NCBI RefSeq assembly: GCF_040938485.1
Contig: NW_027270978.1
Location: forward strand, 310,001 to 374,000
Length of the DNA stretch: 64,000 nucleotides
Source: Diadema antillarum
Taxonomy: Eukaryota
Direction: 5' to 3'
This document shows positions 5,441-45,204 of the stretch, piece after piece. The position numbers and the translations under genes are program-made. The notes below the pieces were generated by a model. That model did no database searches, was not told where the DNA came from, and saw only the letters and a program-made list of their open reading frames with translations. Positions within the stretch are counted from its first letter, which is position 1. Every line of letters begins with the position of its first letter.

Positions 5441-6205
5441 CTGTGACTCTAACGGTGAACTGGATGGTTTGCGGGATGTCGGAGACTCTCAGACGTGGGT
5501 TCAGCCTAATTCCTCCAGTGGTCGTATTCAGCAGCAGGTGATCCTGATCGTTTCCGTTGATGATTTCGTATTCCAGGGTGTCGGACTCATCGGGATCTGT
5601 CGCGGGTACCCTTCCAATATCTCCCTCCAGGAAGTATCCTTCATAGTTGTTGAAAAAGATCTCAAAGTCCCCAAGAATGGGTGCGTTGTCGTTGACGTCC
5701 GTCACCCTGATGTAAACCGTTGCTTCTGCGAAAAAAGGAACGTTGGTCGCATGGACGACCACCTCGTACTGGTTGCGGGCCTCGTAGTCGAACATCTCCA
5801 ACGACGTGATCAGTCCAGAATCTGGGTTGATCTCGAAGAAATCCTGGTCGCCTCTGACAATGGTATACTGGATGAGTGAATTGAACCCGGAGTCTGGATC
5901 GGTCGCTGTCAGTTTCATCACCTGCTCTCCGGGTATGCGATTCTCTCTGATCGTGACAAAGTATTCCCGTTCAGAAAACGACGGAGGATTGTCGTTGGTG
6001 TCCGTGATTTCCACATCGACCATCACCGAGGTGCTCAGCGATGGAACGCCTTGGTCGTAGGCATTAGCCACCAGGTGGTACTCGGCCCGAGACTCGCGGT
6101 CCAGCATGGAAGCGACACGGATGACCCCAGACGTTTCATCTATGGTAAACCGCCCACCTCCATCATTCCCGCCTTCAAATGTGTACTTGACTGCACTGTT
6201 CATTC
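5441..6205 (-). CDS. CELSR: CELSR/Flamingo copy A, coding exon 2 (rest of EC7, EC8, EC9 cadherin repeats)
   Basis: ORF 5346..6230 encodes LDRE, DxNDN and DPD cadherin motifs and the CELSR-type EC9 (FNNYEGYF..GRVPATDPD). Acceptor ctcag|GA at 6206/6205, donor ACAG|gtgag at 5441/5440; 765 nt, phase 1 to 1. Later exons are not in the window. Confidence 0.9.
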
Positions 6206-7162
6206 CTGAGTTCAACAAAAATAAAAACAAACATGATATAAATACTACATAAATTCAGTTAGAAATATCAGATTCAGATTACATGATGAATAGAGAGCTC
6301 TGAACAACATTTAAATGACAATAACATATTACTGTCTGTTCCAACAGCTATGAAGAGCAATTCGAATTAAACTGAAGTGGAGACAATGGTGACGTGCCAT
6401 TTTGCTCATTCTACTTGGGCATTTAAAAGCTGTGAAAAGAATATGAAAAAGGGAGGGAAACACACAAATATATGTCAACAAAAAAGTGAAATATATATCA
6501 TATCACCGCATATCGTATTTTCTCACATCTGAGTCATTTATATCTGACATATCAAAATTCATCCAAACAATATATACAAAGGCATTTCAAACGCATCAAA
6601 ATTTGCACATGAAAACCAAATCATCTATTCATCAGTGTACCTTCCCCCCCCCCAAAAAAAAAAAAGGTTAAATGAAAATGATATTTCAAATGAACCATTT
6701 GCAGGTTCAAGCTTAACATTCTGTATTGTGTATGTGGCAGTAATGCCTTCATGTACAAACATATTTTTGTACTATGATCATACAATATTGACACAGTTAC
6801 ATGATTATGTTACTTTTGTGCATCATTAGCACTCCTACTGAGTAAACACAAGGGTGTTAAGAGAACAAAGAATGCCTCTCTATGACAATATGCACTTGGC
6901 AGAGCTTCGAGTAGGTTATCATTACTCAGACATTATGGCAATTTTGAGTCTCTTGAAAGACATGAACATCCAGACTTTGTACCTGATAAACAATAAGCTA
7001 AGAGCAGTGCTCAATGTTGTATTCAGTCATCACATTACATATTTGGGTTACTTAATTTTTTGTCCCCTTCCAAGTACCCACTGTTCCTAAACTTGTTGCC
7101 GGTCTGTGGTGGTGGCACCTAATGTTTGTCTACGCAAAATATTTGGTACATCTGCTCAAAGG

Positions 7163-7555
7163 TTAAAGGGACTGTACAGTACCGGTTGAGGTAGGGATTC
7201 ATGTTTTGAACATTCCTAAGTGAGATAATAAAAAGCCTCTTATGAAATATGAAAGAGCATGTAATTTTAAGAAGAATTCAATGTTTATTTGATGAAAATT
7301 GGTTTTCAAATGGCCGAGATATCCAAAAAAAAGTTCTAATAATAAAAGGCGACATGCCCCAACTTTATTAGTATCTCTTTGTTTCATCTTGTTTTTGGAT
7401 ATCTCAGCCATTCCAAAAACCGATTTTCATCGAATAAACTTTTGATACCCCTTAGAACTGCATGCTCTTTGACATCTCATAGAGTGGTTTTGAATATCTC
7501 ACAAAACGTTAAAAGCTAAATCTTCACCTCGACCAGAATTGTACACACCCTTTAA
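7163..7555. mobile_element. Non-autonomous TTAA-flanked DNA transposon (Kolobok-like MITE)
   Basis: ttaa|agggactgtacagtaccggttgagg ... cctcgaccagaattgtacacaccct|ttaa: imperfect TIRs with TTAA at both ends. Confidence 0.7.
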
Positions 7556-7756
7556 CATCACATTTCACATGAACACACTGTGCTTCAGCATTTTGCTGCA
7601 TTTTTTCATTAGCTCATGCAGAAAGTCTTCATTATGAATTCATGACCTTCAAAGAAAATATACTGTACAATGTAATTCTTCATCATATCCTTGTTTGATT
7701 ATTTGTCTATACCGTGTAGTTATGTATAGATGTCTACCACATGCTGTCAATCCACA

Positions 7757-7960
7757 ATAAATGGTTGTTATTTATCTGCATCATGTTTAGAATTACAAAA
7801 ATGGAAAGTGAAGATCTTATTCTACAAGTGTATGCCACACCTCACTAGCTTGTTCTTCAGATGTAAAATGGTTGTTATTTATCTGCATGTTTAGAATTAA
7901 AATGGAAAGTGAAGATCTTATTCTACAAGTGTATGCCACACCTCACTAGCTTGTTCTTCA
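7757..7960. repeat. Local tandem duplication, about 100 bp x2
   Basis: aaatggttgttatttatctgcat...cacctcactagcttgttcttca occurs twice. Confidence 0.8.
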
Positions 7961-15990: not shown

Positions 15991-16085
15991 AATAATGCTT
16001 TACCCACTTTGTGATCAAAATCTTCATTATGGTTCCTAGTATGTTTCCTTTCATGCAAGACGATGAAATTTAAATACAAACTTAC

Positions 16086-18963
16086 CCTGATCCGCATCTG
16101 ATGCAGAGATAGTGGTGATACTGGTGAGTGGAGCTGAGTTTTCTTGGATTTCTGCTTCATACTTCGCTGTGGCAAAGACAGGAGCATTATCATTGATGTC
16201 TTGTATGGTAATTTGCACAAATGCTCTGGACTGCTGGGGGATGTCGCCGTGGTCACTGGCGGTCACATACAGCGTATAATGGGACGTTGCTTCACGGTCT
16301 AGCTCCACTCGGGTGCGTATCTCTCCCGATTCTGCATTGATTTCAAACTCCGGTACATTATCCATGCTGTAGCTTATTTCCGCATTGGATCCCGCATCAT
16401 TGTCGGAGGCCGAGACTTGGACGACGACGTGGCCAATGGAAACCGACTCGCTGACGTACACATTATACGGTGAGTTCTGAAATACAGGAGCATAGTTGTT
16501 GACATCGGTAACATTCACAAGGACTAGACAGGTGCTGTCGTACTGTCCATCAGAAGCGGTGACTGTGAGAGAATAGAAAGATTTGGAATTGTAATTCAGC
16601 TGAGAGGTAACTTGAATAGCTCCCTCGTTGTTTTGGCTCCTGATGCCGAATGGGATGCGTCTGTTGGGGTCCTCTGAATCGGCAATCCTGTACGAAATGG
16701 TGTTCTGCTCATCAGGGTCTGTTGCCACGACAGTTAGGACTTCATAGCCGCTGAACACATCCTCTCTCACTGAACCTGTATATCTCTCCTGCGGAAATGT
16801 GGGAGGGTTATCATTTACATCGGTGACTGTGATCATGACTGAAGCCGTCGCACTCCGTGGAATCTCCCCACCATCAACGGCAAGGACGTTAAATTCCCAC
16901 TGGTGATTCAACTCACGATCAAGGTTGATGACTGTAGTGATGGCGCCTGATGTTGGTCCGATATCGAACGGAAAGTTGTTCGGAGGATTAGGGATTGAGA
17001 ATGTTATCCTAGCATTATCTCCTTCATCATCATCTCTTGCATTGACAGACAGAATCGAGTAGTCCACACCAACATCCTCTCTCACGATTCCCTGGTACAC
17101 ATTCTGGGTGAATTGGGGTCCATTGTCATTAACGTCAATGACAGTCACAGTGACAGTGGTAGTATTCTCCCGCGGTGGATTGCCAGAATCTTGGGCACGT
17201 ATAGTCAGACGGTAGCTTCTAGCAGTTTCAAAGTCGAGCGCATTCTGAAGTGACAGGTATCCGTTGTTGGAGTCAATTCGGAAGCGCCCTTCAAAATTGC
17301 CATACGTCAAGCTGTAGTGGACTTCAGCGTTTGCACCTATATCGGCATCTGTGGCGATGACATGGAGAATCTGACTACCAGGGTCGTGCGGACCAACATC
17401 TTCCCTGACCGACACCTCATATGATGCTTGTGAAAATTGGGGAGAGTTGTCGTTGACATCTAGAACTGTCAGGGACACTTCTGCTGTAGAATTTCTCCTC
17501 ATTGGATTTGTTCCCATATCCTGCGCCATCACAATCAAGTTGTACCGTTCAATGCGCTCTCTGTCAAGCCTTTCTCGTGTTTTGATTTCTCCACTAGAGG
17601 GATTGATTGTGAACACGTTGTTGGGGCTTTGGCTATTCACAATGCTATACCGAATATTTGCATTGTCCCCGATGTCCCCGTCTGAGGCCTGAACTCTGGT
17701 TATCAGTGTTCCCGGATTTTGACTTTCACTGGTGGTAATAACATAGCTGGGCTGCTCAAATATGGGGGTGTGGTCATTGCGATCGTCCACATAAATGGTC
17801 AGGTAGGTAGTGGCAGATTTTGGTGGTGTGCCACCGTCAGTCGCAGTGAGACGAAATGTGTGGGATTCTATCGTTTCTCTGTCAAGAGCCATTGTCGTCA
17901 CTATCAGACCTGTGTCTGGATTGATGTCAAACATGGCTCCACTCCGAGCATCTGACTGAGCTGTCATGCTGTAAGTGAGTTGGCCATTGACACCATCATC
18001 ATTGTCAGTTGCCGTGATCGTTATTACCACATATCCGGGATCCTCATTCTCTGGGACTCTCTGTGTGTACACAGTACTGCTGAATGAAGGGAAGGTGTTT
18101 CGGACCTGCCGTCTAAAACGATTCAAAACGACCTTGCCGTGGCCAGATTTATCTCCACGTGATTGGTCACTTCTTTGATCCTGGTCTGCTGCTTGCAGCT
18201 CAATTGATATTGGAATCACTTCATCTTCCTCATCCCCAGAGCGGTAAAACTGACCCCTCGATAAACACGACTCCGGTATGTGCATCGATCCAAGTACGCT
18301 CTCTGACTGGTGCTGCAAAACACACAAGATATCCTGCTCCATGGTCAGAATGCCGCTTTTGGGGTCAACACCAAGCTGGTTTGTGTTAGTGTCAAGAAGG
18401 TCATACACCACCGGGCATCCTTTTAGAGATGATGGAAGGAAACTTCTCAACTGTAGTAGGATATCTCCAATAAACCAACATGTTCCTTCGGGATACTCAA
18501 CAAGAATTTGCTGAGGCTGAGTTGCTGTTAATGGAGTATGGCCATGTTGAGAATCAAAATCTTTTTTCCTCGCTTTCCTTGGATGGCAGCCATTCCCATG
18601 AACATGAATGGCTATTGGCACCAATGTAGATGATGACAGGCCATTTTTCATTTCTGTTTGATCAGATCTAGTCCTGCTTGTTCGTGCTTGTACATACAAA
18701 GTGAAAGGATTCTCATGGAGTAAGCTACAGTCTAATTCGCCACTGAGCGATACATCCCCAGTGCTGCTGTCAATTTGAACACGTTCCTTCGCATCCTCAC
18801 CTGTCAAAGTTGGATGCAACACGTATGTCCACTCACCGCTTAACGAAATATTAAATATAGAAATGTCAGGTTCGAGAAATGTCGAGACGTGAACGTTAAA
18901 TGCGGCTAAAGCCGAGCTGTGGAAAACAGCCGCCACCCACAAGATGCGGAGAAGGGACGCCAT
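16086..18963 (-). CDS. CELSR: CELSR/Flamingo copy A, large coding exon 1 (signal peptide, prodomain, RFRR furin site, EC1-EC6, start of EC7)
   Basis: 994-aa ORF 16051..19035. Signal-like MASLLRILWVAAVFHSSALA (ATG 18963; another in-frame ATG at 18981), RFRR|QVRN, six DxNDN-type linkers, donor GATCAGG|gtaagt at 16086/16085 (phase 1). A single huge first exon is typical of CELSR genes. Confidence 0.92.
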
Positions 18964-20316
18964 AGCGCCCCGCAACATCATTTCAAATACCGCTCCGCCT
19001 GTCGGTACGTTGCGACGACAAACCGCAGAATTCACTCTGGCTTCTCTGCTCTGGCCACGATTTATGGTATCCGAGTCCCGATATATTCCATGAAACTAAA
19101 TCACATAATGTTTATCCATCCGGAGGCATCACGTAACATACTTCCATGGTGTTTGAAAAGTTTTCCGAGCACTTTATTAACCCTTATGTCCTGTCTTCCG
19201 ACTTCATAAATCCGTTTCCACAGAACACGACGTTCTCACGGGAAGTACCAACGGACGTATTAGCAGAAGAGCAGAGAGAAGCGTTCCTATTGGGAGGGCT
19301 TCGGCGCGGCGGTCGCCAGTAGAAGGGGCTGATGCATGTACCCCAAACGCTGGTGGTGGTAGAGCGCTCCAGTGATGCGGCACCGCAAGGAGATCCGAAA
19401 AACATCACATATCGCACAGTGTACGAAGTGGAGAAACGTATTCACTCTCCGTGTGTTGTCACAAGATGGCAGCATAGTGTATACGATTCGTATGTAATGA
19501 AGAGCGGTATCTAGTAATATGTTCAACTTTCTATTTTACAATGATCTGATCCAGGTATTGTTTGCCAGGAAATGAGAAGATAAATGGCAGACATTAGTTT
19601 TTGTTTGCCGAGAAGATAAACCTATAGCAAATCATCTTCTTTACTGCTATGTCGTGATTTCAGTGTTCACTAACTGTCAGAACTCAAACCCTACAATGTC
19701 AACATAGATAATAAACACAATAGTAGTAGTAGAGGTAGTAGTAGTAGTAGCGGTGCTCATTGCGCTTCAAAGAAGAAGAGGAGGAAATAATACACTAGTA
19801 CATTTTACAAACATGACAGCAGGGAAGGGGAAAAAACAAATACATACTAGTTGAGGAACATAATTTTTTGTTGTGGATTTTACATTATGGATTACAGTTA
19901 TGTAATCCTCAGTGTGACAAGAACAAATTACGTTTGGTTTGACTGTTTCTGTAGATGACAGTTGGTGTACCGGAATGTTATGTTGATTCCACAGTCTTGG
20001 TCCCATAAGGGAGAAAGCACGATCCCAATCCATGTTTTATTTTGGATGTTTGTTCGTAACAGTGCATCGGAAAAAAAAAAGCAGCAGGTATGAATATTTC
20101 AACCGTTAAAGTTTTGTGACATCTTTATTTGGAAGATTACAAAACAGCGAATTCGAAAAATCCAAATGAGAAGATGAAAAGCATGAAAAAACATTTCAGC
20201 TGTAGTTTCAGACAGAAACTTTCTTATAAGATTTAAACTTATTCCTACTGCAACCCTTTTATTCCCGATTGATTCCTTCCTCTTGTCAGAGTCTCTTTCA
20301 TACAGCCCTTTTTCAC

Positions 20317-27788: not shown

Positions 27789-27793
<5 letters not shown>

Positions 27794-29183: not shown

Positions 29184-29484
29184 TATATGTTGTTACCTAG
29201 TATACACAATGCACTGAATGCTTCACCTTATGCTCATTTAATGACCGTGCACTATTCTATATAGGCCTACCTGCAAAAACTGAAGACTTCTGTTTTAGTT
29301 TAATGACATATTCATCTCTTGACTGTCCATGATATTACAAGGAAATGATTATTATAAGAACTACAGGTAATATAGAACTCAGTTTTGGGTAAAAAGAAGA
29401 GAAATCTGTAATAATGATGGATTTTTATTCAATCTAAAGCAGTTCTAGTCTCTTCTCTTATTACTATTTTTTTTTTTTTTGCAG

Positions 29485-30628: not shown

Positions 30629-31249
30629 ACGGATTAAATGTAGTGGCAGCACTTGGCAAGTTCCACGTGTTCATAGTGACTGCTGACATGCTTGCCAACA
30701 GTGTGACGGTTCGCATGGAGGGCATTCACTCCAGCGAGTTCCTGTCCTCAAAGTTGGTCCGCTTCACGGAAACCATGGAGAGGATCATCCCCACACACCG
30801 GGACTTCATCCACATCTTCAGCATCCAGACAGAAGGTCCCGGACTCCTGAGCATCACCTTTGCGGCGCAGCGCCCCGACGGCACTTTCTTCACCTCTCAG
30901 CACCTCCAAGAAAGGATATACGTCAAACGAAGCCAGCTCTCCTCGGCGCTTGGTGCCACCGTTCTGCCGTTCAGTGACGACCTCTGTCTGCAGGAGATAT
31001 GCAGTGGCTTCCACCAGTGCGTGGCAACGGTCAGCTCCTGGACTCCAGGTGAGGTCATTGCCACTGCAACGGTGATCTTCCACTCCGTCCATCCCGAGAT
31101 CCACTACAGCTGTGTCTGTCCTCCAGGGTATACAGGAAACTACTGCCTCACAGAGGTTAACTTCTGCTACTCGAGCCCTTGCGCCAATGGAGGTACCTGT
31201 GTCCAGAAAGAGCAGGGGTACACTTGCTTGTGCCAAGATGGATTTACAG
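30629..31249 (+). CDS. CELSR-like copy C, exon 3 (membrane-adjacent/Flamingo-box region, EGF1, EGF2)
   Basis: DGLNVVAA..DMLANSVTVRM..DDLCLQEIC..CPPGYTGNYC..CYSSPCANGGTC; tag|AC acceptor, ACAG|gtaggc donor; 621 nt. Confidence 0.9.
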
Positions 31250-31633
31250 GTAGGCTACAGAATATATGCATACTAAAAATGTGTGCCATTCATTAGGAAG
31301 TCTTTTATTGTGTGTGTGTGTGGAGGGTGAGGGGGTTGGAAGTGGGAAGCGAAGATGAGAGAATAGAAAAATTTGAATGGAAAATTAAAAAGAAATGTAT
31401 TGTAAAGCATTACATTTTCAAGACCATGATTCAGGCCTCTTTCTGGAGAGTTCTTTATTATGTCCCATGAGGTACATAATTATAATGTACAAACATTGAC
31501 CATTGTTGAAGTTTTGCAATGTCTACGAGGTGTCTAAAATGGAATTTGATTTATAGATGTCTTCACATACTTGAGTATGTATTTCAGTCACTGAAGATTT
31601 TCCAAGGATAAAGGCACTCGATGGGATCCAAAC

Positions 31634-32010
31634 CAGGGCTGGCGGAGCGTTTTCAAAAGGTGGGGGCCACTTCCGGGTTTCATGAGCTAACAAAAAAAAA
31701 AAAAAGCCTTCAGCGCAACTTCTGGTGGCACTTCTAGGTTTCTTCGGCTGAGAAGCCACAACAACAACAGCAACAACAACAACAACAAAAAAAAAGGTCT
31801 TCAACCCCCCTCCCCCCCAAAAAAAATAACCTTACTGCGCTCACACTTCAAGGTCTATATTTATTTTTTGAGTGCCACTTATGCACTTCCGGGGTAAAAA
31901 AAGTGGGGGTGGGGGAGGGCCCAAAGTGGTGACACCTTATGTATTCCTTTGTATGGTGCAAAGGGGCCTAAGCGCCCCCCCCCCCGGCATCCCCGGTTTC
32001 GCCGGCCATG
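31634..32010. mobile_element. MITE-like dispersed repeat
   Basis: cagggctggcggagcg ... ggtttcgccggccatg imperfect inverted termini, poly-G/C internal tracts. Confidence 0.55.
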
Positions 32011-33949
32011 CAAACTTGGGACCTGTAATTGAAAAGTCAGGAGTCTCATCAACTATGCTGCAGTGCCCCCACAAAATTTATTCACAAATATTAGATGGAC
32101 TCCTCATATATTGTGTTATCACAAACACACTCGCACACACGCACACATTTCTAAAATTTGCCTTTGCCATCTGTAACAAATGGTACATTTCATATGATAA
32201 TGGTGGATGATTATTTTTTTGTTGCAAGTGAGTAATGGGAGTGAGTATATTATGTTGTAGATTTTGATCTCATTTGGTAGATTCAACTGAGTTACCATAC
32301 ATCTAGTAACATGCTAACTGATTTCAGACTCATTGATGAGGATGCAATTGTATCTCTGATGCTGTGAATCAGGCAAAGTATATCAAGTGAAGTATCCAAA
32401 CAGCAATATATCAGATTCATATCAACTATTTCCAGAGACCTACTCTTGACTGAATTGAGAGGTCTGCTGGTGTTGCTCAGCTTCAGTCAATGGATACTGC
32501 AAAGATTTGATGGTACAGAGACGTGATTATGTTACATATGGGTCAGTTAAACAGAAGCTGCAATATGAACAAATCAAATTTCTGTTTTCTGTTTCTTGAA
32601 GTGGCACATCTTATTTGTTCTAAGTCTCTCTTATAACTACTCATCACTTGGACTGCTGGTAGCAGCTCCTCTTGAAAATCACTCCACCGCCTACACCTGC
32701 CTTGGTGTACGTGCGCTTGTGTGAGTGCGTGGAAATGTTCGTGTTTCTCCATCTGGTTTTTATCACTCTTGTATTATGCTACCCTGCAAATTAATCTTAG
32801 ATATAAAAACAACATTACAAATTCTGTTTGAACCCATGCCAAATGTTAAAATTCACTGTTTCCTTCAGAGAGCAGAGTTTGAAACCTCTAGGGTTCTTCA
32901 GGGTTTAACAGCTCTTCACTGCACTGAAAATGTGAGGGTAGGATGATATTTTGACCGATTTACCGGTACTATAGAGTGCCACCTTGAATCGAGAAGGTCA
33001 GAATGAAGTGGCATCTTTTGTGAAGTTGATCTTATTTCAGTGAGCTTGCAAGTTTTCCTGTGCAAATGATGATATCTGGGACCAGTTGAGATTATGAGAG
33101 TGCACTGTACACCATAGTGAAATGATTATGCTTATGTGTGTTTATTTCTTGTCACACTTTATGCTTATCTTTTTCATCTGCCTTTTGCCATATATTAGTT
33201 TGGTTCCCTTTAACATCCCTGAATTGTTTTTGTATGTACTGATTCTATTCTTATGTGCTGACAACAACAGTGTCCTGTGTACAACAAGTGTGTTCAGGAT
33301 CTTGAAGGAATTCAAACTAAGTTTCCCCATAATTAGTGACATTTTGATGATGTGATTTTGTGATGATGGAATTTTGTCACATATCATCTTGCTATCTCGA
33401 ATCAGCTCCTCAGAATTTCATTACATATGTGATATATCTGGATTCAGTGTATATGTAGAGAAACTGAGATTATATGGAACTGATTCATTCATTAAGTTTG
33501 CACAAGATCAAAAAGACATCTATACCAAAATGTGCCAATTTGAGATAGAAAAAGGAACTGCAACAATGTGTTGCTGATTTAAAGGACACGTAGGAACTTC
33601 ATTGTCTTCTGAAATATATCGACTTGTTAAGAATTAGCTGCAAATCAAGCATGTAGGGTCTTTTGAAAAATCTGCATAAATTCATCATGAATAAAAAAAA
33701 AACCAACAACAACTTTGTTCTTCTAAAGGTTTCATTAATCCAAAACAAAGTAAGGTTCGTAATTCTGAATGTCTGTTAGTACGCACCTTTTTAAAATTTT
33801 CAGATTAATAAACCTTCAAAATATCAAACTTTTGAAATAATGAATCTGTTTTCATTTTTGGATTAACCAATCTTTGGAATTATCAACACCATACCAAGTA
33901 TTAGCCCTCAATTTGTTATGACTTTGTTGTTGTTGTTGAAATGATTCAG

Positions 33950-34121
33950 GTGTAAACTGTGAGACAGAAAACTACTTTGGTGGAGAGTTTGATTGGATCT
34001 GCCATGACCTTGACCTCTCTGATGGACCCTACTGCAAGATGAGAACACGGAGCTTCATGGGGGATTCACTTATGATGTTCCCCTCCCTAACTCAGAGAGT
34101 GAGGTTCCAACTGTCCGTAAG
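33950..34121 (+). CDS. CELSR-like copy C, exon 4 (shortened EGF3, start of LamG1)
   Basis: GVNCETENYFGGEFDWICHDLDLSDGPYCKMRTRSFMGDSLMMFPSLTQRVRFQLSV; cag|GT acceptor, AG|gttaga donor; phase 1 to 2. Confidence 0.8.
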
Positions 34122-34526
34122 GTTAGAATTGGATTGCCTTTTCCATGAGTATTTCAGTTTTCATACAATTAGATATCTTGTGTGTATGTACCACACAATG
34201 ATAGCATAGAACTCTGTGTGCACATAATCATAAGTGGTGGTAAAAGTAGGGAAGATAGTTTTTTATGGAGCAATTGCACAGCACACCACACATCCCCCCA
34301 AATTACGACGATACAAGTCATTGATGGACTTTACTGGAAAGGAAGATGAAGAAGGAGAAGAGAGGTTGTTAAGTTAAACATATTCATATGCACACATGTA
34401 TTCATGTGTGTGCATATATATCTTATATAAAGGGTTGGTGAATGTTAGTGAAGGGGGAAAGAAGTCAGAGTTCACTTTCTGCGGTCTGAAACTGAATCAT
34501 AGTGAGTGATTCATTCTCCTGTTAAG

Positions 34527-34731
34527 CTTTGCCACCCGCAAGCCGAGTGGAATGATCTTCTATAATGGATGCTACAACCAGCAGCATGACTTCATCGCCC
34601 TTGAGATCGTCGACGATCAGGTGCAGTTCTCCTTCTCGACAGGAAGTGATGTCACCACGGTAACGGCCAGCAGAGTGGGAGGAGTCAGTGACGAGCAGTG
34701 GCACACGGTTGTCATCGAATACTATTTGATG
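34527..34731 (+). CDS. CELSR-like copy C, exon 5 (LamG1)
   Basis: SFATRKPSGMIFYNGCYNQQHDFIALEIVDDQVQFSFSTG..GGVSDEQWHTV; phase 2 to 0. Confidence 0.88.
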
Positions 34732-35037
34732 GTAGGTACCATGGTACTATTTGATGGTTGGTGTGTTCAGTCAATTTTTATATGTGCAACAATTTAATCG
34801 TGAATTGCGTCCTCGGTGATTCCTGTCACCCGTGTACTTTCTGTTTAGTCCACAGTTGAAGAATTTTCCTTCCCTTAGAATACTACCCTACCACAATGAC
34901 TACATTATATTTGTAGTAAATTTTTTTTTTGTCACTATCGCAGAGATTGTGGAATTGAAATTCTACATTATGTTACATTTCTGGAATATATGTAATCTTT
35001 ATTAAGTGTGTATATTTATTGTTATTGATACTAACAG

Positions 35038-35147
35038 ACTGCTACCATTATTCTGGATGAATGCGACGCGGCCATTGCTCTCGCATATGACGGTGATCAC
35101 CCTGACTACAGCTGTGCTGCCTCAGCAACTGGGAGTGGGGAGTACAG
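35038..35147 (+). CDS. CELSR-like copy C, exon 6 (LamG1)
   Basis: TATIILDECDAAIALAYDGDHPDYSCAASATGSGEYR, matching the CELSR DxCD..NYSCAA motif; cag| acceptor, AG|gtaatg donor. Confidence 0.82.
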
Positions 35148-35274
35148 GTAATGGTGGTGGGGGGGGGGGGGGAGGTATGCATAAAATAATGTGCTACTTC
35201 TGATCTGACATCAACTGTGTTTGTTTGTTTGTTTGTTTGTTTGTTTGATTGTTTGTTCACTTCCATCTGAGAAG

Positions 35275-35597
35275 ATGGCTGGATAGCCCATATTCAGCTA
35301 TGCTAAACTGGTCTTCCATGGGGTCCAGTTGGATGTGAGGTGGGACCACTTCACTGGGTTAAACACCCTGCTCTTTGCGATGAATGAATAAAGCGGGATC
35401 TTTTACGTGCATGAGCTGTGACTCTCTCATACACGGTACCTCCGTTTTATGTCCTATCCGAGGGACAGAGTGTTTTGCCTCTTGCTAGAGGGGACGGTAT
35501 GTTTACACACAACATTGCTCAGTCCAGACTTGGGTTTGAACCCGGGTCCTTAGGATCGTGAGGCAGACGTGCTACCGACTGAACCAACTCACCGCCC
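35275..35597 (-). mobile_element. tRNA-derived SINE
   Basis: Reverse complement begins GGCGGTGAGTTGGTTCAGTCGG (A box) and contains GGTTCAAACCC (B box). The core resembles Nin/Deu-type SINE domains (recollection, not aligned). Confidence 0.7.
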
Positions 35598-36020
35598 TGC
35601 GTATGTGTCATGTTCTTTAAATGAAAATGACACATGTTCTCTAAATGACAGATTTCTGTCAATTTGCTACATTTTTGTCAGTAGCAAAGCATAGCCCAGT
35701 GTGTAGAATGTGTAGAGCAATTACTTCCACAAGGCAGACCGCAGTATGGGTATGCATAGGGTTAAATCTGAGATGTATTCATAACCTAATAAAGTAGGAT
35801 AAAAAATGGTAAAATGAGAAAGTATTTTTGTCTCATACTGATTCATAATGTGGCTTGCAAGGATGTATATTACAATTGACACTAAGCTCCACAGTTTAGA
35901 CCCTTGTAAAAGTAGTTTGCTTTTGGTTTGGGTTATTGTTTAATTTCAAACAAGAACAAACTTATACACAACATGACATACTTGGATACATATCCAAAGT
36001 GCAGTATCAGATACAGAGTA

Positions 36021-36678
36021 TACTGATAGTGAACATTTTAGCATTATTGTTTGCAGTGATGGTATTTGAATCGATGTGCATGAATAAAAGGTGAAATAAT
36101 AGCTTTACAAGAGTTGCTACACACTGTACATCTCAGTGTTATTTGAAATTTACTTCTTGTTTCATGAACCCCACTGTATACTTTGCCAAGTTTGACTATC
36201 TCATTTTACATTAATAACGTAATACCTATGTGCTTTTGAATACTGATAGTGAACATTTTAGCATTATTGTTTGCAGTGATGGTATTTGAATCGATGTGCA
36301 TGAATAAAAGGTGAAATAATAGCTTTACAAGAGTTGCTACACACTGTACATCTCAGTGTTATTTGAAATTTACTTCTTGTTTCATGAACCCCACTGTATA
36401 CTTTGCCAAGTTTGACTATCTCATTTTACATTAATAACGTAATACCTATGTGCTTTTGAATACTGATAGTGAACATTTTAGCATTATTGTTTGCAGTGAT
36501 GGTATTTGAATCGATGTGCATGAATAAAAGGTGAAATAATAGCTTTACAAGAGTTGCTACACACTGTACATCTCAGTGTTATTTGAAATTTACTTCTTGT
36601 TTCATGAACCCCACTGTATACTTTGCCAAGTTTGACTATCTCATTTTACATTAATAACGTAATACCTATGTGCTTTTG
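36021..36678. repeat. Three essentially identical 220-bp tandem copies
   Basis: tactgatagtgaacatttt starts at 36021, 36241 and 36461. Confidence 0.92.
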
Positions 36679-37205
36679 TGGTTTGAATTTGTTGATTTCA
36701 TTCAGAATTAGTCCCTGTTAATGTCAAGACGCCCTCATGCTCTTTTTAGAGAGTGATAAATTCTAATCAGGATGAAAACATTCTATATGTTTTCATTTTC
36801 ACTTAAGTCAATTAAATAGAGATAGGTGGTCAATTCATTTGTGATGTTAAACACAAAAAATTAGATTTCTACATGGTTATTCTTTTGAAAAACACCATTC
36901 AAATTCATTTTTCAAGTCTATTCATTTTATTTATCAGAAGAATGTAATCTAACAAAATGTTTGCATTTCATATACACATCAGAACATAGTGTAAATATAA
37001 CAAAGCATGTAACAAAAATACAAAAAGATGATACCAGATTGAGAAATACAATTCCCTTTCTTTCAAGGTTAATTGACTTAAGTAGTCCTCTAATATGATT
37101 GTTTGTCTTCATTGTCAAAAAAAATGAGAGATTTTTATTTTTTATTTCTTTATCCTTTTGTGTTTGCAGGGCACTAAAACATCTTTCAATTTATTCTATC
37201 TGTAG

Positions 37206-37501
37206 GTTGTTGGACCTGACTGGACCATTCTTTCTGGGCAATCTTCCAGACATCTCCAACTCCAGCCGAGCTCAGGGGGAGGATTTGGACTTTGACGGTT
37301 GCATCCGGGACGTCTACATCGACAACGAGCTCCTCGATCTCGCCACCAACGTGGAGGACGTGGGCACCCAACCCGGCTGCCCGCACAAGTCCGACTTCTG
37401 CGAGTCAGACCCCTGTCACACGGGAGCCACTTGTGAGAGCGGATGGGACCGCTACACCTGTCACTGTTCCTCCCAGAGTGGAGGGGTTAATTGCCAGGAA
37501 A
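37206..37501 (+). CDS. CELSR-like copy C, exon 7 (end of LamG1, EGF4)
   Basis: LDLTGPFFLGNLP..FDGCIRDVYIDNELLDL..GCPHKSDFCESDPCHTGATC..CQE; phase 2 to 1. Confidence 0.88.
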
Positions 37502-38521
37502 GTAGGTTCTGTCTGTCGGCAATTTCTCTTGTCCCTAACAATGCCTCTTTTTTGGTATTACACAATGATTAATGCTTTGCTCTCCAAAGTGTGACTTTTG
37601 ATGCATCCGCCTGATGCACCAAGTGTAGCTTGTGGCACAAATGCAAGTGCAGTGCATAAAGCCAGTAAAATACATAGGATGTGATACATCGTGCTTTCTT
37701 CTATACCCATCATTGCACAGAGTTCTGACACTTCTTGGAAGACAACAAAGATGAATTAAGTCACAACTGGTATAAACAATTTATCCTGGTCTGCACAGCT
37801 TATATTCAGTGTCTGTAAAATCAGTCGGATGGTGTGGAGTTTTGCTCACAGTGCATCAAATAAAAAATAATGAACAATGTCATGCCTGGATTGTAGGTGT
37901 ATTTCTGTGAGCTCACATTTGTCTGCAGGAAATCTCAAATAATGTCAGTAATTCTATTGATATCATTCTATCCATAAAGAAACAGGATCTTTAGTAGATA
38001 AATGTTTTTAAAAAAGATCTGATTGCAAGAACTTATCTCAAATATGATATGTAGAACATTCTTTGGAAAGATGCAGCATTAATTTATGCCATTTTTTCCA
38101 GAAGATTCCATTTGGTGGCAGTATTAGAGCATTTGTCAACTTTGACCTAAAACTACCACTGAGTGAAGCGATCTGGAGTGAAAGTGGTCAGCAGAATTAT
38201 TCTCATGTCATTGTCTTTGCATTTAATCATATTTTTCTCTTTATCTGTACAAAACAGGAAATGCAAACATATTGGTCATGAATTGCGTATATCACTGTGA
38301 CTAGAAATTTTAAACCTTTACATATATTTTTTTTTTGATACCATGTGCAGTCTTGTTTTTTCCTTCTTCTTTCCCACTCCTTATTCTACTTCCTTTATCC
38401 CTTCCTCTTTTCCTTCTTCATCTTTCTCATTTTCATCTGTCTTATATGAGTAAAAATATGTTATATATTGCAATTGTATGATCTTACGATGAGTAGTATT
38501 GTTTTTTTTTCCATGTTGAAG

Positions 38522-38685
38522 CCATGTTAGATCCTGTTCATGTCAAAAATGATGGCTACATGACCTTTGACACCAATGAGACAATCACCCTATCGTGGAC
38601 CAATCACATCGCTTTCCGCACCAGGGACCCCAGTGGAGTCTTGATGTTTCTTGAGTTGACAAATGATGCCAACATTCGAATTGAG
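38522..38685 (+). CDS. CELSR-like copy C, exon 8 (LamG2)
   Basis: TMLDPVHVKNDGYMTF..WTNHIAFRTRDPSGVLM..IRIE; donor GAG|gtttgt. An alternative in-frame acceptor exists at 38531. Confidence 0.8.
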
Positions 38686-39842
38686 GTTTGTTTTGGGAGA
38701 CACACAAATGAAATATCCAAACACATCTTTTATACTATGTCTGTCTTAGGACATTCAACGTAATGCAATGCAATTGCACAATGCAATAGCTTATAAATAC
38801 GAGTCTACACTCCTTCCTAGGTAGCTGTATCTCATAGATTCTTCTTTTTTTATCTGCAAAGGTAGTGTGGGTTATTTTTTTTTCTCTCTCTCTGATGTGG
38901 TAGATCATGGATGGTGTGACATCCTGTAAGCCTGTAAAATGCCTTCTTCTCCTGTTTGTGGGACATTTTAAGAGTTTTATTGCAAAATGAGCTAACTCCA
39001 TTCTCGTTAAGTTGAGACATTTGTGATTAAAGCTGCTAAAAAACAAAGAAAATAATAAAGTACAGGATATATTTAATCATGACTTCCAAGATATTCCTTG
39101 TTATGTCACAAGTGAAGTGTTACTGGAAAGGATTAATTTTGCTCGATCTGATGATGGACTTACATGTACTTTAAAATGTTTAGAAATGGTGCCTAGCTCA
39201 TTTGCGATAAAAGTCTTAATTTATTGAACATGTGATAAGAGCAGCAAATGGTAGTTCTCGATATACAGCAGAAAGAAAGAACTGAATATCTAACGAACTG
39301 TTCACAGACTATCAGAAATATAGAACATAGAAGATTTGCATCTTCAAAGAGTTTCCAATCACTCTGACAGGCCACGTAGCAGGACGGTGCACCTTGCAGT
39401 CTAGGCTGAAAGACACAAAACATTTCTCTATTGAGATCTCAAACCCTTGTATACTTGATTGTTTTTGCTTCCATCTAGTATTGAGCTCACTCTTGCACAC
39501 CTGTCTAAGTCTTATGGTCTAATTAGGGTGCATTAAATGGATATCATTATTTTTTTGTGGTATACATTATAGAATGTGTCTTCTTCCTCGTATCAGTTAG
39601 AATGGAAATACTGTGGGAAGATCTTTGTGGTTCAAAAGTCTTCATCAGGTGGTATATTGCCAAGTTGGAGCCAATTAACTTTATTGAATTTGGCAGAGTA
39701 ACAAGTAGTGAATGTAAGTTTACCCGCGGAAGACGAGTCCCGCGTATACTCAGGCAGGTGTCTATAGGAAATGTGTGTTGTAGCAAAATTGGCCTATTCT
39801 CAACGGGTTAATGAAGCATGATAAAATTGTATATCTTATGTG

Positions 39843-40206
39843 CAGAGACCCCAACTCTCCTGCTTTCGACGGGAGATCTCCCGCCGAAAGCCCAGTTTTG
39901 CAAAATCTCCCGTTCTCCTGCTTGAGTTTTAATTTCTCCCGCCCTGGCTCTGTGTCTCCCACTTGAAATGATTTCTTACTTAATTTCATCGTACGTTGAA
40001 AAATGAGCCGTAGATAACACAAGAGAGCATCTAGAATCCTAGAGTTTCCAGGGTCCGCTAAGGGCCCTGGATCCCTGCTGCAAGGAATTTCGCACTTCGC
40101 GCTCGTGATGTGCGAGAAGCGCACATCAACTTTGAGTCTCCCGTTTGCTAGGGGTTTCAGGAGGGAGAATCTCCAGATTAGAAGGTGCTTGGGGTTGGAG
40201 TCTCTG
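39843..40206. mobile_element. MITE with CAGAGAC..CCAAC termini and a 6-bp flanking direct repeat
   Basis: tatgtg|cagagaccccaac ... gttggagtctctg|tatgtg. Confidence 0.7.
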
Positions 40207-40299
40207 TATGTGTGTTGAGACACACCCTGCGTGTGTAAGCAAAAGGCTAAATTCAACATGTTGTTCCTAAAGAGTCTCATTGTTTGGCCCCCCCTGCAG

Positions 40300-40446
40300 T
40301 TGGTCGATGGCTACATCCACTACGTCACCAGCTCAGTCAGTGTCCAGCTTGACCAGCGACCAGTCAGTGACGGGGAGTGGCATGACTTCTTGGCAGAGTG
40401 GGAGAATAACACAGTGATTCTCTCAGTGGATTTTGATTGGGACCTG
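40300..40446 (+). CDS. CELSR-like copy C, exon 9 (LamG2)
   Basis: LVDGYIHY..PVSDGEWHDFLAEW..LSVDFDWDL; cag| acceptor and |gtgagt donor; phase 0 to 0. Confidence 0.85.
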
Positions 40447-40913
40447 GTGAGTGTCCATGAGGAGACACTTTCAGCTAAGCTTTGTACTTGTTTAACAGAA
40501 TTTTAGAATTGAAAAGTCGTCCATTTAGTAATAGCACATACTCTCCAACATTCTTGAAAAGAATGTTGGTAAAGGTAAAATAACAGTTATTGTTTAGATG
40601 AACACATGTTGCACATTGAGGCTGACTTCAGTGTATGAAATGAAATAAGACAACTTATACATGTAGAACAGTGAGCTCCATATATCTATAAAAAATGATA
40701 AAAAGTAAAGGCAGTTTAAAGGGTTTACATGTTTCCCAGTGTTTTCTAACAACAATTATATCTGTTAATTGTTTGTTCCTTCGGACGTGAATTAATGATG
40801 GTGCCATGGTCCTTGGTCATATCGCCATGTTTGCTATCTTATGTAGATATTAAGTCCTTATGTTCAGAGAGGTGTGTAAACTCCAGTCTAATGAACATTT
40901 CCTGTACTAACAG

Positions 40914-41024
40914 AGGTCTGTTCGAGCCATGGACAGCCTTGACGGAGAGAGGGTGATCAGAGTGACGCTGGGAGGGATGTTGACAGAGGGCGCTCTCACC
41001 AATGGCTTCGCTGGATGCCTAATG
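40914..41024 (+). CDS. CELSR-like copy C, exon 10 (end of LamG2)
   Basis: RSVRAMDSLDGERVIRVTLGGMLTEGALTNGFAGCLM (LamG GFxGC motif); phase 0 to 0. Confidence 0.8.
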
Positions 41025-41694
41025 GTATTGTTTCTGTCATCTCACCAGTGTGTTGATGACTGTGGGATAAATTATATCTTGCTAAGTGAAATAACCGGTA
41101 GTATGAAAGTAGCATGAACATGGAGTGTGTAGATGTAGGTTTTATTGCATGACATCACAGGACCCATTGAATATTCATGATCTCCTTAGGAAGCCATAGT
41201 TCAGAGATGAAACATCTCAGATGAATAAATGTATCAACAACCAGCTCGTTATTTTCATTTCAGATTCCAATCAAGAATAGCATAAATTTGAATGTAATTG
41301 AATTGAACATTGACTTTTGCAGTTTTGTATTCCATTATCCAAGTACTTGTATTCCATTTGATCTCATTCCCTTTTGAAGTTTTAAGTTTATTACTATTTA
41401 TCTTCACATTTTTATATTGCATAATACATTACAAAAGAAACATGCATGAATACATAATAAAAGGTACCAGAAAATAGCATGAATGCTAATCAAGTCTGAT
41501 ACTTATTACAAAGGTTATAAAAAGGTAGTATGTACAGTACAATGTATAGCTCTAGTTTGAAAATACATGAAACATGAACATATTTACAACTTTTTACATC
41601 ATAATACATTTGAGTTGAAAACTCGACGTGATAATACATGTACATCTTCTTTTGATCCCCTGTGCCCCTCCATCCTACCCAACCCTACCCCTAG

Positions 41695-41854
41695 GGAATG
41701 TCCATCGGTGGTAGCCCCCTGGACCCTGCCGTGGGGGCAAGGACCAATGTGGAGGATGTCTGCAATGCCCCAGACTCCTGCCTGGATGCAGACTGCCCCA
41801 CCCACAGCCAGTGTGTGGATCTGTGGGACCTACATGAGTGCCGTTGTGACAAAG
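41695..41854 (+). CDS. CELSR-like copy C, exon 11 (EGF5)
   Basis: GMSIGG..NVEDVCNAPDSCLDADCPTHSQCVDLWDLHECRCDKG; phase 0 to 1. Confidence 0.87.
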
Positions 41855-42553
41855 GTGGGCTTTTCTCCCACACAGGTTCCATCTTGATCCATCCACAGTC
41901 TGTCATAATTCTCCCAAACCACTGTTATTCTATTTTTCACTGGCATTTTAAATCATTATAATGTATTATCATTGCTCTCAGCTTCCAAGGATCAGACAAA
42001 AAACAGTGGAAATTGTAATGATTGTAGTAGACTATATAAGTTAGTCTGGCAAAAGCTTTGGGCATACCTAAATATATAAAATAAAATCTAGTAAAAGCTT
42101 GGGTTCTAAATAGATCACAATAAAAGTGATGGGAAAAGCAGATAAAAAGTGACTTTTCATTCACATTCATTATTAAGTTGCCATTTTCAGCAGCTCTCTA
42201 ATATATCTCTATCCAGAGTCTGTGTAATTCTGGTAAGTCTGTTTCATTCTTGTTTGAGGCAGCTGACAATATTTGTCGTTTTTGTTGTTGCTGATGAGTC
42301 TTTAGTACCGGTACTGGATAGTAATTTTTGAAGTAGCTCAGAGTGTGAGCTATACCTTGATGGGTAGGGCTTAAGTGCACACTAGGCATGTGGGATCAGT
42401 AGTGTTATGTCATATAACAACATGTATAGAGCTCATGAATAATAATGTATTGTACAGCACTGGAGAAGTTGGAGCAGCAACTCGTGATAACATTTGCGCA
42501 AACTTGATTCTTTAAATAAAACAAAATGGGGGCATTTTCAACTTCTTTTTCAG

Positions 42554-42813
42554 GTCATTTTGGCCCTGAATGCTTGTCAGCGTGTGAACTGGGTGCGTGC
42601 CAGCATGGCTCCACCTGTGACCTTTCTCCGGAGACAGATCTTGGCTACAGCTGCACCTGCTCGGAGCGTTTCTATGGCGACCACTGCCAGCACATGGTTG
42701 AAGAGTGCCCAGATGACTGGTGGGGATACCCGGTCTGCGGCCCCTGCGAGTGTGATGAGGACATGGGATTTGACCCCACTTGCAACAAGACCACAGGGGA
42801 ATGTCACTGCCAG
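42554..42813 (+). CDS. CELSR-like copy C, exon 12 (EGF6 and CPxxWWG laminin-type EGF region)
   Basis: GHFGPECLSACELGACQHGSTC..ECPDDWWGYPVCGPCECDEDMGFDPTCNKTTGECHCQ, a diagnostic CELSR motif. Confidence 0.92.
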
Positions 42814-43472
42814 GTAAGGACAAGGAGACTGGGACCTGGAAGCCGGATTGTAGACTAGAATATTGGACTTTACCAAAAAGAGAACACTTTTTTATCTCTT
42901 AAAAAAAAAATCATTTGAACTACATGTTGTAGCCTGTCTAGATCGTATGATTTATATGAAATGTCTCACACATAATCATCTAAAGCCAAACAACAAAGCT
43001 GTTTTGTGACTTCTTTCTAAGTCTAAGAATTTGGTACTGTCAAATGTATGAGGTTCCATTTCTGTTTGTTATCAGGTATAAGCACAAAAGGAGTATTATG
43101 CTATTCTGGCTATTTTTCTGATTAGTATAAGATTAGAAGTGTAAAAATGTTTCTTGACAATATTTCTGAAAAGAAATGTTTCATAATTACTGTTGCTGTC
43201 CCCTAGTTCTGTAACGGTATCCTTGTATTTGATTTTTTTTTAATCATTTGCTTGTTAAGCTACAAATGACCTTTCTTGGATGTGAAGGCATTGACATACC
43301 ACGAGGAAGAGAAAAGATGACTAAAAAAAATGAAACAACAATACCACTCAAACTTCCTGATTTGATATTCTACAGCAATGAATATTCCCTATGTATATTC
43401 CATTGTGAAGTCATATACCATTATTGTCAAATTTCATTGAAAGTGGTGTTGCATTTGACTCCTCCTACACAG

Positions 43473-43656
43473 GAACACTTCTACCGCCTTTCAGACAGTG
43501 ACACCTGTTACCCCTGTGGTTGCTATGAGGTTGGATCCTCCAGTCAAGACTGTGACCAACAGACCGGTCAGTGCTCCTGCAGGAGGGGGGTTAATGGCCG
43601 GCGATGCGATGCCTGTGATGACCCCCATGCTGAAGTCACAACCAGTGGATGCGAAG
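43473..43656 (+). CDS. CELSR-like copy C, exon 13 (laminin-type EGF)
   Basis: EHFYRLSDSDTCYPCGCYEVGSSSQDCDQQTGQCSCRRGVNGRRCDACDDPHAEVTTSGCE; phase 0 to 1. Confidence 0.9.
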
Positions 43657-43816
43657 GTAGTAACCTTGACCAGCTGAAACTATTTTCTTCTAGTTGATGT
43701 CCAATAAATGAACAGTGACCTTATGTTAGGATTTTTTAGAAATGTGCTTAGAGGTAACAGACATGGCTCATTAAATGATGTACACATAGGAAAACATTTT
43801 ATTTTTATTTTTTGAA

Positions 43817-43980
43817 CAGGGGTCAATTTCATGAAAGTCTTATGAGAGACTTTTGCTCACATGACACAATTATGACAGACTTCATGAAATGGATTTTACT
43901 TTTTTACATAGCTACATATGAGCAACTTCTGAGATTAATGTAAAGGCTTCTTTGTGATGACTTTATGAAACAGACCCCTG
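43817..43980. mobile_element. Short MITE (CAGGGGTC..TTTCAT ends)
   Basis: caggggtcaatttcatgaaagtc ... gactttatgaaacagacccctg. Confidence 0.65.
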
Positions 43981-44961
43981 GTAGATTAAAAAGTTTGGTT
44001 TTTAATGCCATCATCATTCAGTATTATAAATTGGGCTTCAGAATCTCTGCAATCTGATTGGTCAATTGTCAAGCATTGATTTTTACTGATCCACACTGAG
44101 CCATGCGTCCGGTAAAATCCGAATGCATGGCTCAAGTCTTGTATAGTGTTATAGGTGTACCAGATGCATGATGGGGAAAATGGTTGTATTTCATGAATTT
44201 ACAGGGCCCATTTTAAAACACAAATGATGCACAGGCCTATTTCGTGGATCAGTGAGAAATAGATGCTCTCGTTTAACTTTGGAACAGTCTAAAACCCACC
44301 TGCTGCACTCGTAGGTTTAAACAGTTCCAAAATTAAACTCGCGCATCCAATTCTCACCAATCCACTCTGTCCTGTGCATCATTTGTATACTATCTTTGAA
44401 TTATGAGTACTTGGTGTAACTTTTGATATACATCTCGAGTAAGATGAGACATACCATCACGATTTGCTGGGTAAAAAGTTTGTATGGAAATTGTTCACAT
44501 GGTAGACATCTGCCCATCTGAAAATGATTTGGGAGAATTCAGAAAGAGATATGTTTTTAGTACTTGTTTATGAGATGTTATCATACTTCACGTAACAATA
44601 TCACATTCCAGGACTCTGGCTGTGAAGCTGTAGTGTCCTAAGCACATGAAAAACACAAGCACACATATGCACAAAATACCACATGAAGAATTAGGAGATA
44701 AATTTTGCTGTAAACAGGAATATATAGACCAGATATATAAAAAAGAAAGAAAGAATTGCACAATACTTGTATATGGATAATTTCTTCTGCTACCATCAGC
44801 GCAGTATAAAACATTGGGCATTGCAAGTGCATACATAAAAGAATTGCCATAAACATACGTACCACTGTAATTTTCACATAGTGTGTGTTGGTGTTTTCTT
44901 TAATGTTATCCAAATTATTGTCCTTAAAATACTAATTGTATATGTTTCACATAGATAACTG

Positions 44962-45004
<43 letters not shown>

Positions 45005-45016
45005 TTCCCTCCTCAG

Positions 45017-45204
45017 TTATCCATGGATTCTGTCCCAAACACTTTGATGAGGGTCTCTGGTGGCCTAGAACCCAATGGGGCGGGACAGCAACCCTAGACT
45101 GCCCACGAGGGAGCTACGGCACTGCAACGCGTTCGTGCAACTTTGAAAAAAGATGGCAGATGCCAAATCTATCGAACTGCACCTTGGAATACATGTATAG
45201 GTAG
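45017..45204 (+). CDS. CELSR-like copy C, exon 14 (HormR domain), last recognisable exon; in-frame TAG follows directly
   Basis: VIHGFCPKHFDEGLWWPRTQWGG..CPRGSYGTATRSC..WQMPNLSNCT, then TAT AG|G TAG. This reads as either a donor at 45200/45201 or a stop ending at 45204. Confidence 0.85.

Follow-up and report, generated by a model that had tools for sequence, protein, structure and literature searches.

Organization of the locus

CELSR/Flamingo is, to our knowledge, the most conserved adhesion G protein-coupled receptor (GPCR). It forms the adhesive core of planar cell polarity (PCP), and the workings of its very large ectodomain are only now emerging. The stretch of DNA analysed here (the window) comprises 64,000 nucleotides of Diadema antillarum, from contig JBFRCO010000090.1 of assembly GCA_040938485.1, and contains exons 1 and 2 of a CELSR gene (A), an orphan first exon (B) and a 14-exon gene (C) lying head-to-head with B (Table 1). 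It is likely that this three-part block is real and conserved within the genus Diadema, with A being a CELSR receptor, C a secreted CELSR ectodomain and B an inverted duplicate of C exon 1. A previous reading of the window from its letters alone (the sequence-only reading) had proposed three homologous first exons, and the coordinates given for them hold: B and C1 are intact open reading frames (ORFs) and A1 falls within an ORF at 16054-19035. All three end in phase 1, as had also been proposed, and the second exons of A and C (5441-6205 and 29485-30250), likewise proposed to be homologous, are 59-65% identical in protein.

The order A-B-C, followed by the AUH gene, is repeated on a second D. 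antillarum contig, JBFRCO010000020.1 (L005; hereafter the second contig). In Diadema setosum (loci L002/L004), B and C are again head-to-head with AUH behind C, the synteny of B and C being conserved in this relative (order B-C-AUH). On the A side of B, the D. setosum spacer follows the window collinearly up to ~1 kb from the expected A1 start, A1 itself falling outside the stretch compared (L004 ends ~1 kb before it). These comparisons bear on the view that the block is an assembly artefact, either a haplotype mis-join, as the sequence-only reading had considered, or a false inverted duplication. GCA_040938485.1 is uncollapsed, with both haplotypes retained, 84% of BUSCOs duplicated and a quality value (QV) of 44.5 (PMC13511894), which speaks for such an artefact. 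However, the same B-C pair and flanks occur in the independent chromosome assembly of D. setosum and on the second contig, which contradicts a mis-join; B and C are 14% diverged and not identical, and short-read DNA contigs from two samples cover B, C1 and their spacer (the four sequencing runs compared with the window are DNA, and show presence and polymorphism, not expression). The probability of an artefact is considered negligible.

Table 1. Features of the A/B/C locus, with positions in the window.
Feature	Position	Strand	Basis or remark
A coding exon 1 (A1)	16086-18981	-	ORF 16054-19035, translation, Pfam, gene call
A exon 2 (A2): rest of EC7, EC8, EC9 (CELSR-type ninth cadherin)	5441-6205	-	AG acceptor, GT donor
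Exon B, 327 codons	24757-25738	-	intact ORF; 5.8 kb upstream of A1, same strand and phase
B/C spacer, 640 bp between divergent start codons	25739-26378		outside the inverted repeat
C exon 1 (C1), 323 codons + 1 nt, inverted copy of B	26379-27348	+	intact ORF
C exon 2 (C2): EC7-EC9, 766 nt (765 in D. setosum)	29485-30250	+	projection
C exon 3: Flamingo-box/Ig_Shg-like domain and EGF repeats	30629-31249	+	Pfam, projection
C exon 4: EGF and start of LamG1	33950-34121	+	projection
C exon 5: LamG1	34527-34731	+	Pfam, projection
C exon 6: LamG1	35038-35147	+	projection
C exon 7: LamG1 end and EGF	37206-37501	+	Pfam, projection
C exon 8: LamG2	38522-38685	+	projection
C exon 9: LamG2	40300-40446	+	projection
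C exon 10: LamG2	40914-41024	+	projection
C exon 11: EGF	41695-41854	+	projection
C exon 12: EGF and laminin-type EGF	42554-42813	+	Pfam, projection
C exon 13: laminin-type EGF	43473-43656	+	Pfam, projection
C exon 14: HormR, ...NCTLEYMYR, TAG stop at 45202-45204	45017-45204	+	Pfam, projection
Putative vestige of ancestral exon continuation (GAIN start)	45205-45258	+	weak tblastn
Candidate C 3' untranslated region, 2.4-kb block	45205-47604	+	conservation; AATAAA at 45818 and 46004

Gene A, a canonical CELSR/Flamingo gene

A1 encodes a signal peptide, an N-terminal region of ~270 aa, the RFRRQ motif, extracellular cadherin repeats (ECs) 1 to 6 and the start of EC7, with six Cadherin stretches recognized by Pfam. 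Together with A2 it specifies nine ECs with DxNDN-type linkers (Pfam Cadherin x8 plus the CELSR ninth cadherin). A1 is orthologous to, and 67% identical with, the CELSR2-like protein of Lytechinus pictus (P0044), and A2 is 77-81% identical to exon 2 of that species. The genome's own gene call for A has a 3034-aa product with LamG and 13 further Pfam hits. This gene call and the L. pictus orthology support A as an ordinary CELSR/Flamingo adhesion GPCR, in agreement with the sequence-only reading, which had the exon right and its start codon slightly wrong: the annotated ATG lies at 18981, six codons upstream of the proposed 18963 (MLRGAMASLL...), and the L. pictus ortholog likewise begins six residues earlier. 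A exon 3 onward falls beyond the left edge of the window, exon 3 not being found in the remaining 5.4 kb (1-5440). For an EGF/LamG array, HormR, GAIN/GPS and a secretin-type 7TM in A the support is indirect, coming from the gene call and from the L. variegatus CELSR model P0270, in which all of these domains are present. An apparent tblastn extension of the A2 match to 5220 was rejected as spurious, since it passes through a stop.

Several other models of canonical CELSR genes are truncated. They end after exon 2 on the second contig (1248 aa, L005 1-2811) and in L. pictus (1301 aa, L001 10001-18471), the latter running into intron 2, and the L. variegatus model P0270 (1790 aa) is cadherin-less. 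This may reflect either a very long intron 2 that breaks predictions or a cadherin-only short isoform of A. A representative search with A1 returned 150 matches, mostly FAT/dachsous giants with one true ortholog (P0044), and no CELSR tail was present among these 150.

Gene C: exons and domain architecture

The exons of C were obtained by taking the 14 exons of its D. setosum ortholog (P0183, XP_072174166, 1454 aa, annotated 'CELSR2-like') from L002 and projecting them onto the window, with 87-97% identity per exon. The 12 exons that the sequence-only reading had placed after C2, ending at 45204, were reproduced exactly. In the window all acceptors are AG and all donors GT, bar that of exon 1, and all introns are conserved in D. 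setosum and on the second contig. By Pfam, C consists of Cadherin x4, the CELSR ninth cadherin, an Ig_Shg/Flamingo-box-like domain, EGF, two LamG, EGF_laminin and HRM, with nothing after HRM. Relative to A, both B and C are without the N-terminal region and without a stretch that begins where EC2 does and stops shortly before EC5 ends. Their exon holds EC1, a stub of ~15 aa (the EC5 tail and its linker), EC6 and the first part of EC7. With the rest of EC7, EC8 and EC9 supplied by exon 2, C has five of the nine ECs (EC1, EC6 and EC7-EC9), which agrees with the count of five given earlier for B and C. The best solved relative of C is the mouse CELSR1 extracellular region (8vy2), collinear from EC6 to HormR (E = 0, residues 539-1868). 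In an AlphaFold2 model, EC1 and EC6 are predicted confidently and the 17 residues between them have a pLDDT < 50.

Two introns of C have features of their own. Intron 1 carries a high-copy repeat (28066-29255) with 142-nt inverted ends (28124-28265 and 28979-29120) that are 94% complementary; its contig word depth is 500-5000 compared with ~25 in the flanks, and it is probably a small DNA transposon. Intron 2 (30251-30628, 378 nt) is 96.6% identical to D. setosum, above its flanking exons and far above the intron mean of 86%.

The missing receptor half and predicted secretion of C

The sequence-only reading had described C as a GPCR-less paralog head-to-head with B, whose product would be a secreted five-EC ectodomain ending at HormR, and the searches made here bear this out. 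GAIN, GPS and 7tm_2 were not found by Pfam in the C protein (P0183) or in any plus-strand ORF in 45098-63000 (63 ORFs, each 50 aa or longer). The L. variegatus CELSR P0270, which matches C exons 3-14, carries all three domains (Pfam), and tblastn with its residues 892-1790 (E <= 1) gave nothing in either the window or the D. setosum locus including 10 kb of downstream flank. The stop of C stands directly after HormR in three copies, which end in EYMYR, EYMYMYK and EYMYK, and the sole hydrophobic segment of C is its signal peptide. A glycosylphosphatidylinositol anchor was rejected, the C-terminus (...EYMYR) having no hydrophobic tail. To judge from its domains, C is derived from CELSR and is not a GPCR; since it has a signal peptide and no membrane anchor, its product is predicted to be a secreted five-EC CELSR ectodomain. 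The tblastn match of P0270 continues weakly, in frame, for 18 codons beyond the stop to 45258, suggesting that the stop arose inside an ancestral exon. Over the 2.4 kb that follow the stop, identity to D. setosum is 93.5-96.6%, compared with a noncoding median of 89.8%, and this block may be the 3' untranslated region of C.

Conservation and age of C

C is not evolving neutrally. Between the window and D. setosum, the rates of synonymous (dS) and nonsynonymous (dN) substitution are 0.178 and 0.050, respectively (dN/dS, omega, 0.28; p = 1e-26), and none of the 1450 codons is a stop. Between the window and the second contig, omega is 0.32; one base beside a T run was removed to hold the frame in these estimates. 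Exons of C are 92.8% identical to D. setosum and introns ~86%, and derived amino-acid changes are balanced between the two Diadema species (22 vs 21). On these substitution patterns, C is judged to be maintained by purifying selection. In exon 2, synonymous sites between A and C are saturated (proportion of synonymous differences, pS, 0.76), to the same degree as those of A against L. pictus. In the exon-2 protein tree, where the frame break of the window was entered as X, a long stem leads to C, which falls within the echinoid CELSR clade (support 100/98). The saturation of synonymous sites therefore marks C as an old paralog long kept open and not a recent copy being lost.

The C allele of the window

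Two sites set the window's own copy of C apart. A run of eight Ts (30031-30038, plus strand) shifts C2 by +1, where D. setosum and the second contig read ATATTTTT, in frame; the coordinates that the sequence-only reading gave for C2 were correct, the break in its frame having been missed. The donor of C1 (27349-27350), missed in that reading although the exon itself was placed correctly, is GC in the window, where both D. setosum and the second contig have GT. To these two sites can be traced the low-quality flag of the NCBI model for this allele (XP_071485697, 1380 aa, LOW QUALITY PROTEIN, frameshift corrected), which bypasses the GC donor by way of a cryptic donor 70 codons upstream and so skips 70 codons. 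The second contig has an intact C of 1454 aa with all donors GT. A DNA contig of an independent sample covers 29572-30203 and is one letter shorter, the T-run site not being in the indel table, which fits an intact C allele. The allele of the window is either a young null allele or the product of a homopolymer consensus error, and the C gene is intact in the species D. antillarum.

The frameshift and the GC donor, together with the replacement of two conserved EC6 Asp residues in C and the NCBI quality flag, would also be expected if C were a decaying pseudogene, at least in D. antillarum. Decay is nevertheless very improbable: the frameshift is confined to one allele, the second contig being intact; the independent sample is one base shorter across the T-run site; omega is 0.28-0.32 without a stop in 1450 codons; derived changes are not in excess in D. 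antillarum; and the saturation of exon 2 against A means that the frame has been kept open for very long.

Over A1 and the spacer upstream of it, the two D. antillarum contigs share 99.5% identity. Over C (window 26379-45204, L005 10001-31789) their DNA differs by 3-14%, with a dS of 0.106, and in some 150-codon stretches the divergence between the two copies equals or exceeds that of either from D. setosum. Such a pattern suggests deep haplotypes, introgression or a duplication that has gone unrecognised.

The B/C inverted repeat and gene conversion

B and C1 are 86% identical in DNA over 1005 nt, which is approximately the exon, and 75-78% identical in protein. No alignment was obtained between the two sides of the spacer or between the introns. 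The inverted arms measure 858 nt, are 89% complementary and lie 914 nt apart. Comparison of the four B and C exons of the two species shows grouping by gene at the sites of codons 2-48 and 289-329. Codons 125-283 contain 16 sites with grouping by species against 3 with grouping by gene. Within D. setosum, B and C have a dS of 0.047 in the centre, lower than the ortholog values. As these groupings show, the central parts of B and C evolve in concert by gene conversion, to which the similarity of B and C is partly due. Between A and B or C, dS is 0.36-0.63 in EC1, ~0.98 in EC6-7 and saturated in exon 2; exon 1 of B and C has therefore also received sequence from A, most recently in EC1.

An inverted repeat of this kind, with a potential stem of ~860 bp and arms kept alike by conversion, could also be a source of hairpin RNA giving rise to small RNAs against CELSR. 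The length, complementarity and spacing of the arms are as such a locus would have them. Yet both arms keep long ORFs, a signal peptide and splice donors, and substitutions in them are biased to synonymous sites. A hairpin-RNA locus was set aside on these grounds as scarcely credible.

Exon B

B encodes a signal peptide, the RYRRQ motif, EC1, the EC5-tail stub, EC6 and the start of EC7, and ends in the donor GG/GTAAGT (exon/intron), identical in D. setosum. Its open frame, signal peptide and donor are kept in all three copies (window, second contig P0433 and D. setosum). Between the two Diadema species it shows no indel in 982 nt, compared with ~0.17 gaps per substitution in noncoding flanks, and its overall omega is 0.40. 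No second exon of its own was found anywhere in the window. NCBI models of B on both D. antillarum contigs are single read-through exons, one of 293 aa that begins at an internal Met and one of 336 aa that begins at the first. The D. setosum model (314 aa) is joined to a 91-nt terminal exon, which is absent from the window. RefSeq-type models of B are P0389, P0390 and P0433. Directly downstream of B, D. setosum has an insertion of ~10 kb (L004 11918-22095), absent in D. antillarum, with no ORF of at least 150 aa; it contains the 91-nt terminal exon of XP_072174156.

Two accounts of B are to be weighed, B being perhaps a spare first exon for A or perhaps only a conversion partner of C. According to the first, B is a working alternative first exon of A, its donor joining the A2 acceptor: transcription from the B/C spacer through A1, which has no acceptor, would yield a membrane-bound five-EC CELSR without the N-terminal region and EC2-5. 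B and A1 follow one another on the same strand; both have a start codon and signal peptide of their own and a donor phase matching the shared exon, and the position, phase and conserved donor of B are compatible with B-to-A2 splicing. The perfect donor, the survival of the frame and signal peptide in three independent copies, the in-frame nature of all length differences between B and C, the freedom from indels between species and the want of a second exon all speak for this account, which is compatible with the overall explanation of the locus. On the other hand, the NCBI annotation, which drew on 12 adult RNA-seq runs (PMC13511894), contains no B-to-A2 isoform on either D. antillarum contig and models B as a read-through exon; the D. 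setosum model joins B to an exon within a species-specific insertion; omega is 0.71 (p 0.56) for the portions of B left outside conversion with C; and conversion from a selected C could alone keep much of B open. A role for B as a first exon of A is possible but doubtful.

According to the second account, B is a non-functional inverted partial duplicate of C1 that has stayed open only through conversion from C and, in EC1, from A. The concerted evolution of codons 125-283, the low central dS between B and C in D. setosum, the private ends without significant constraint, the end of homology at the exon borders with no downstream exon and the inconsistency of B gene models between species agree with it. 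However, the private N-terminal 48 and C-terminal ~45 codons group by gene and are hence unrefreshed by conversion, and these ends have remained open, with signal peptide and donor kept in three copies, despite a dS to C of 0.28-0.56; the sole indel of B against C, of 12 nt, is in frame. A non-functional B is a substantial possibility, if short of a probable one.

Neighbouring features

Against D. setosum, the B/C spacer has an identity of 93.7% if only aligned columns are considered and 86.4% with gaps counted, which is in the noncoding range, and it may be a shared bidirectional promoter. The spacer between A1 and B contains two direct copies of 228 nt (21389-21859), 99% identical with a spacing of 243 nt. 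AUH lies on the minus strand, tail-to-tail with C, and shows two adjacent, similar enoyl-CoA-hydratase exon-like ORFs in tandem (57654-58272, minus strand; ...DLKERI..EEVGP...). Further downstream is a p38-MAPK-like first exon, the plus-strand ORF at 63239-63481, which we take by eye to be the N-terminus of a p38-type MAP kinase.

Proposed history and function of the locus

In the preferred explanation, C is an old duplicate of A that has kept the intron-exon layout and lost the N-terminal region of ~270 aa. An in-frame deletion within its exon 1 has removed EC2-EC5, so that EC1 is joined to EC6 by a short and probably flexible stub, and a stop within an ancestral exon has removed everything after HormR: GAIN, the cleavage site, all seven helices and the cytoplasmic end. 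The resulting product reads, in order, signal peptide, RYRRQ, EC1, EC6-EC9, Flamingo box, EGF/LamG array and HormR. B is an inverted duplicate of the first exon of C only, 640 bp away and pointing towards A, and B and C, together with A in the EC1 stretch, exchange sequence by gene conversion. The evolutionary steps are documented by the comparisons above; all that is said of function is inferred.

Several points weigh against this explanation. The exon-2 tree does not decide between an origin of C before and after the Diadema-Lytechinus split (approximately unbiased, AU, test p 0.21); no C-like gene was found outside Diadema among the proteins searched, and no B/C copy occurs within 10 kb upstream of the L. 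pictus A ortholog. The C allele of the window has a frameshift and a non-canonical donor, and the two D. antillarum copies of C are 7.6% apart in protein, which is unusual under strong constraint. The constraint on the private parts of B, with the omega given above, is not significant. Finally, the secretion, 3' end and function of C rest on sequence and NCBI models.

In mouse CELSR1, CADH1-8 are required for adhesion through an antiparallel dimer, and a CADH9-GAIN module is closed by the contact between CADH9 and GAIN (PMC12038025). Because EC2-5 and GAIN are absent, C is unlikely to form a normal antiparallel adhesive dimer; it is more probably a secreted ectodomain that is non-adhesive or differently adhesive, with an open EGF/LamG/HormR surface. 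Through this surface and EC1/EC6-9, C could act as a soluble binder of, or competitor for, the partners of A, which would be its most economical role. That the products of the locus tune or antagonize PCP adhesion is speculation. It is also conceivable, and distinctly unlikely, that one bidirectional promoter serves B and C to make a membrane-bound five-EC Flamingo from B and A alongside a soluble C with the same EC1/EC6-9 head, kept identical by conversion, the two forming a receptor/decoy (or receptor/ligand) module built onto the PCP receptor, with first-exon choice of the protocadherin type in a CELSR gene.

Comparison with known systems

The sequence-only reading had known of no described arrangement of this kind. 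This stands for the literature searched, in which no paper describing the B and C RefSeq genes was found, but not for the databases, where automatic RefSeq models of all three genes exist. These are the very same genes, C being XP_072174166, XP_071495430 and XP_071485697 and B being XP_072174156 and XP_071495274. The models of A, B and C are named CELSR2-like or CELSR3-like ('cadherin EGF LAG seven-pass G-type receptor 2-like' or '3-like'), and such names are misleading for B and C, which are not seven-pass receptors.

Gene A shares the N-terminal layout of the CELSR/Flamingo/Starry night family (ADGRC), and C shares with CELSR genes the exon layout, including the large exon 1 and the same phases. 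Compared with mouse CELSR1 (8vy2, PMC12038025), C is collinear over the whole part that starts at EC6 and includes the Flamingo box, the EGF/LamG array, laminin-EGF and HormR, but is without EC2-5, GAIN, GPS and 7TM; it cannot adopt a compact module closed by CADH9/GAIN, and four of the repeats that make up the antiparallel CADH1-8 overlap are missing. C can thus be regarded as a natural dissection, in which an EC1/EC6-9 head and an EGF/LamG/HormR array occur apart from adhesion and signalling.

Arrays of variable first exons, such as those of the clustered protocadherins and UGT1A, offer a second comparison. Like them, B and A1 are large cadherin first exons with signal peptides, in tandem and with same-phase donors before a shared downstream exon, and their coding parts are homogenised by conversion whereas the flanks are not. 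In contrast to such arrays, Diadema has only two candidate variable exons, C1 is reversed and heads a gene of its own, and NCBI models contain no B-to-A2 junction. Gene conversion confined to exons is seen here in clear form, involving three first exons that encode cadherin repeats.

Soluble ectodomains of adhesion GPCRs are already known: in a survey of human and mouse, about half of the genes were found to make soluble N termini by alternative splicing or intron retention (PMC11039983). The outcome is the same as that predicted for C, a secreted ectodomain without GPS cleavage. C differs from these isoforms in being a separate, old and selected paralog with its own promoter region and a remodelled cadherin array, the soluble outcome being fixed in a separate gene. 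Were C to bind the complete receptor or partners of it, this would be the first case of a dedicated soluble regulator encoded next to a CELSR gene.

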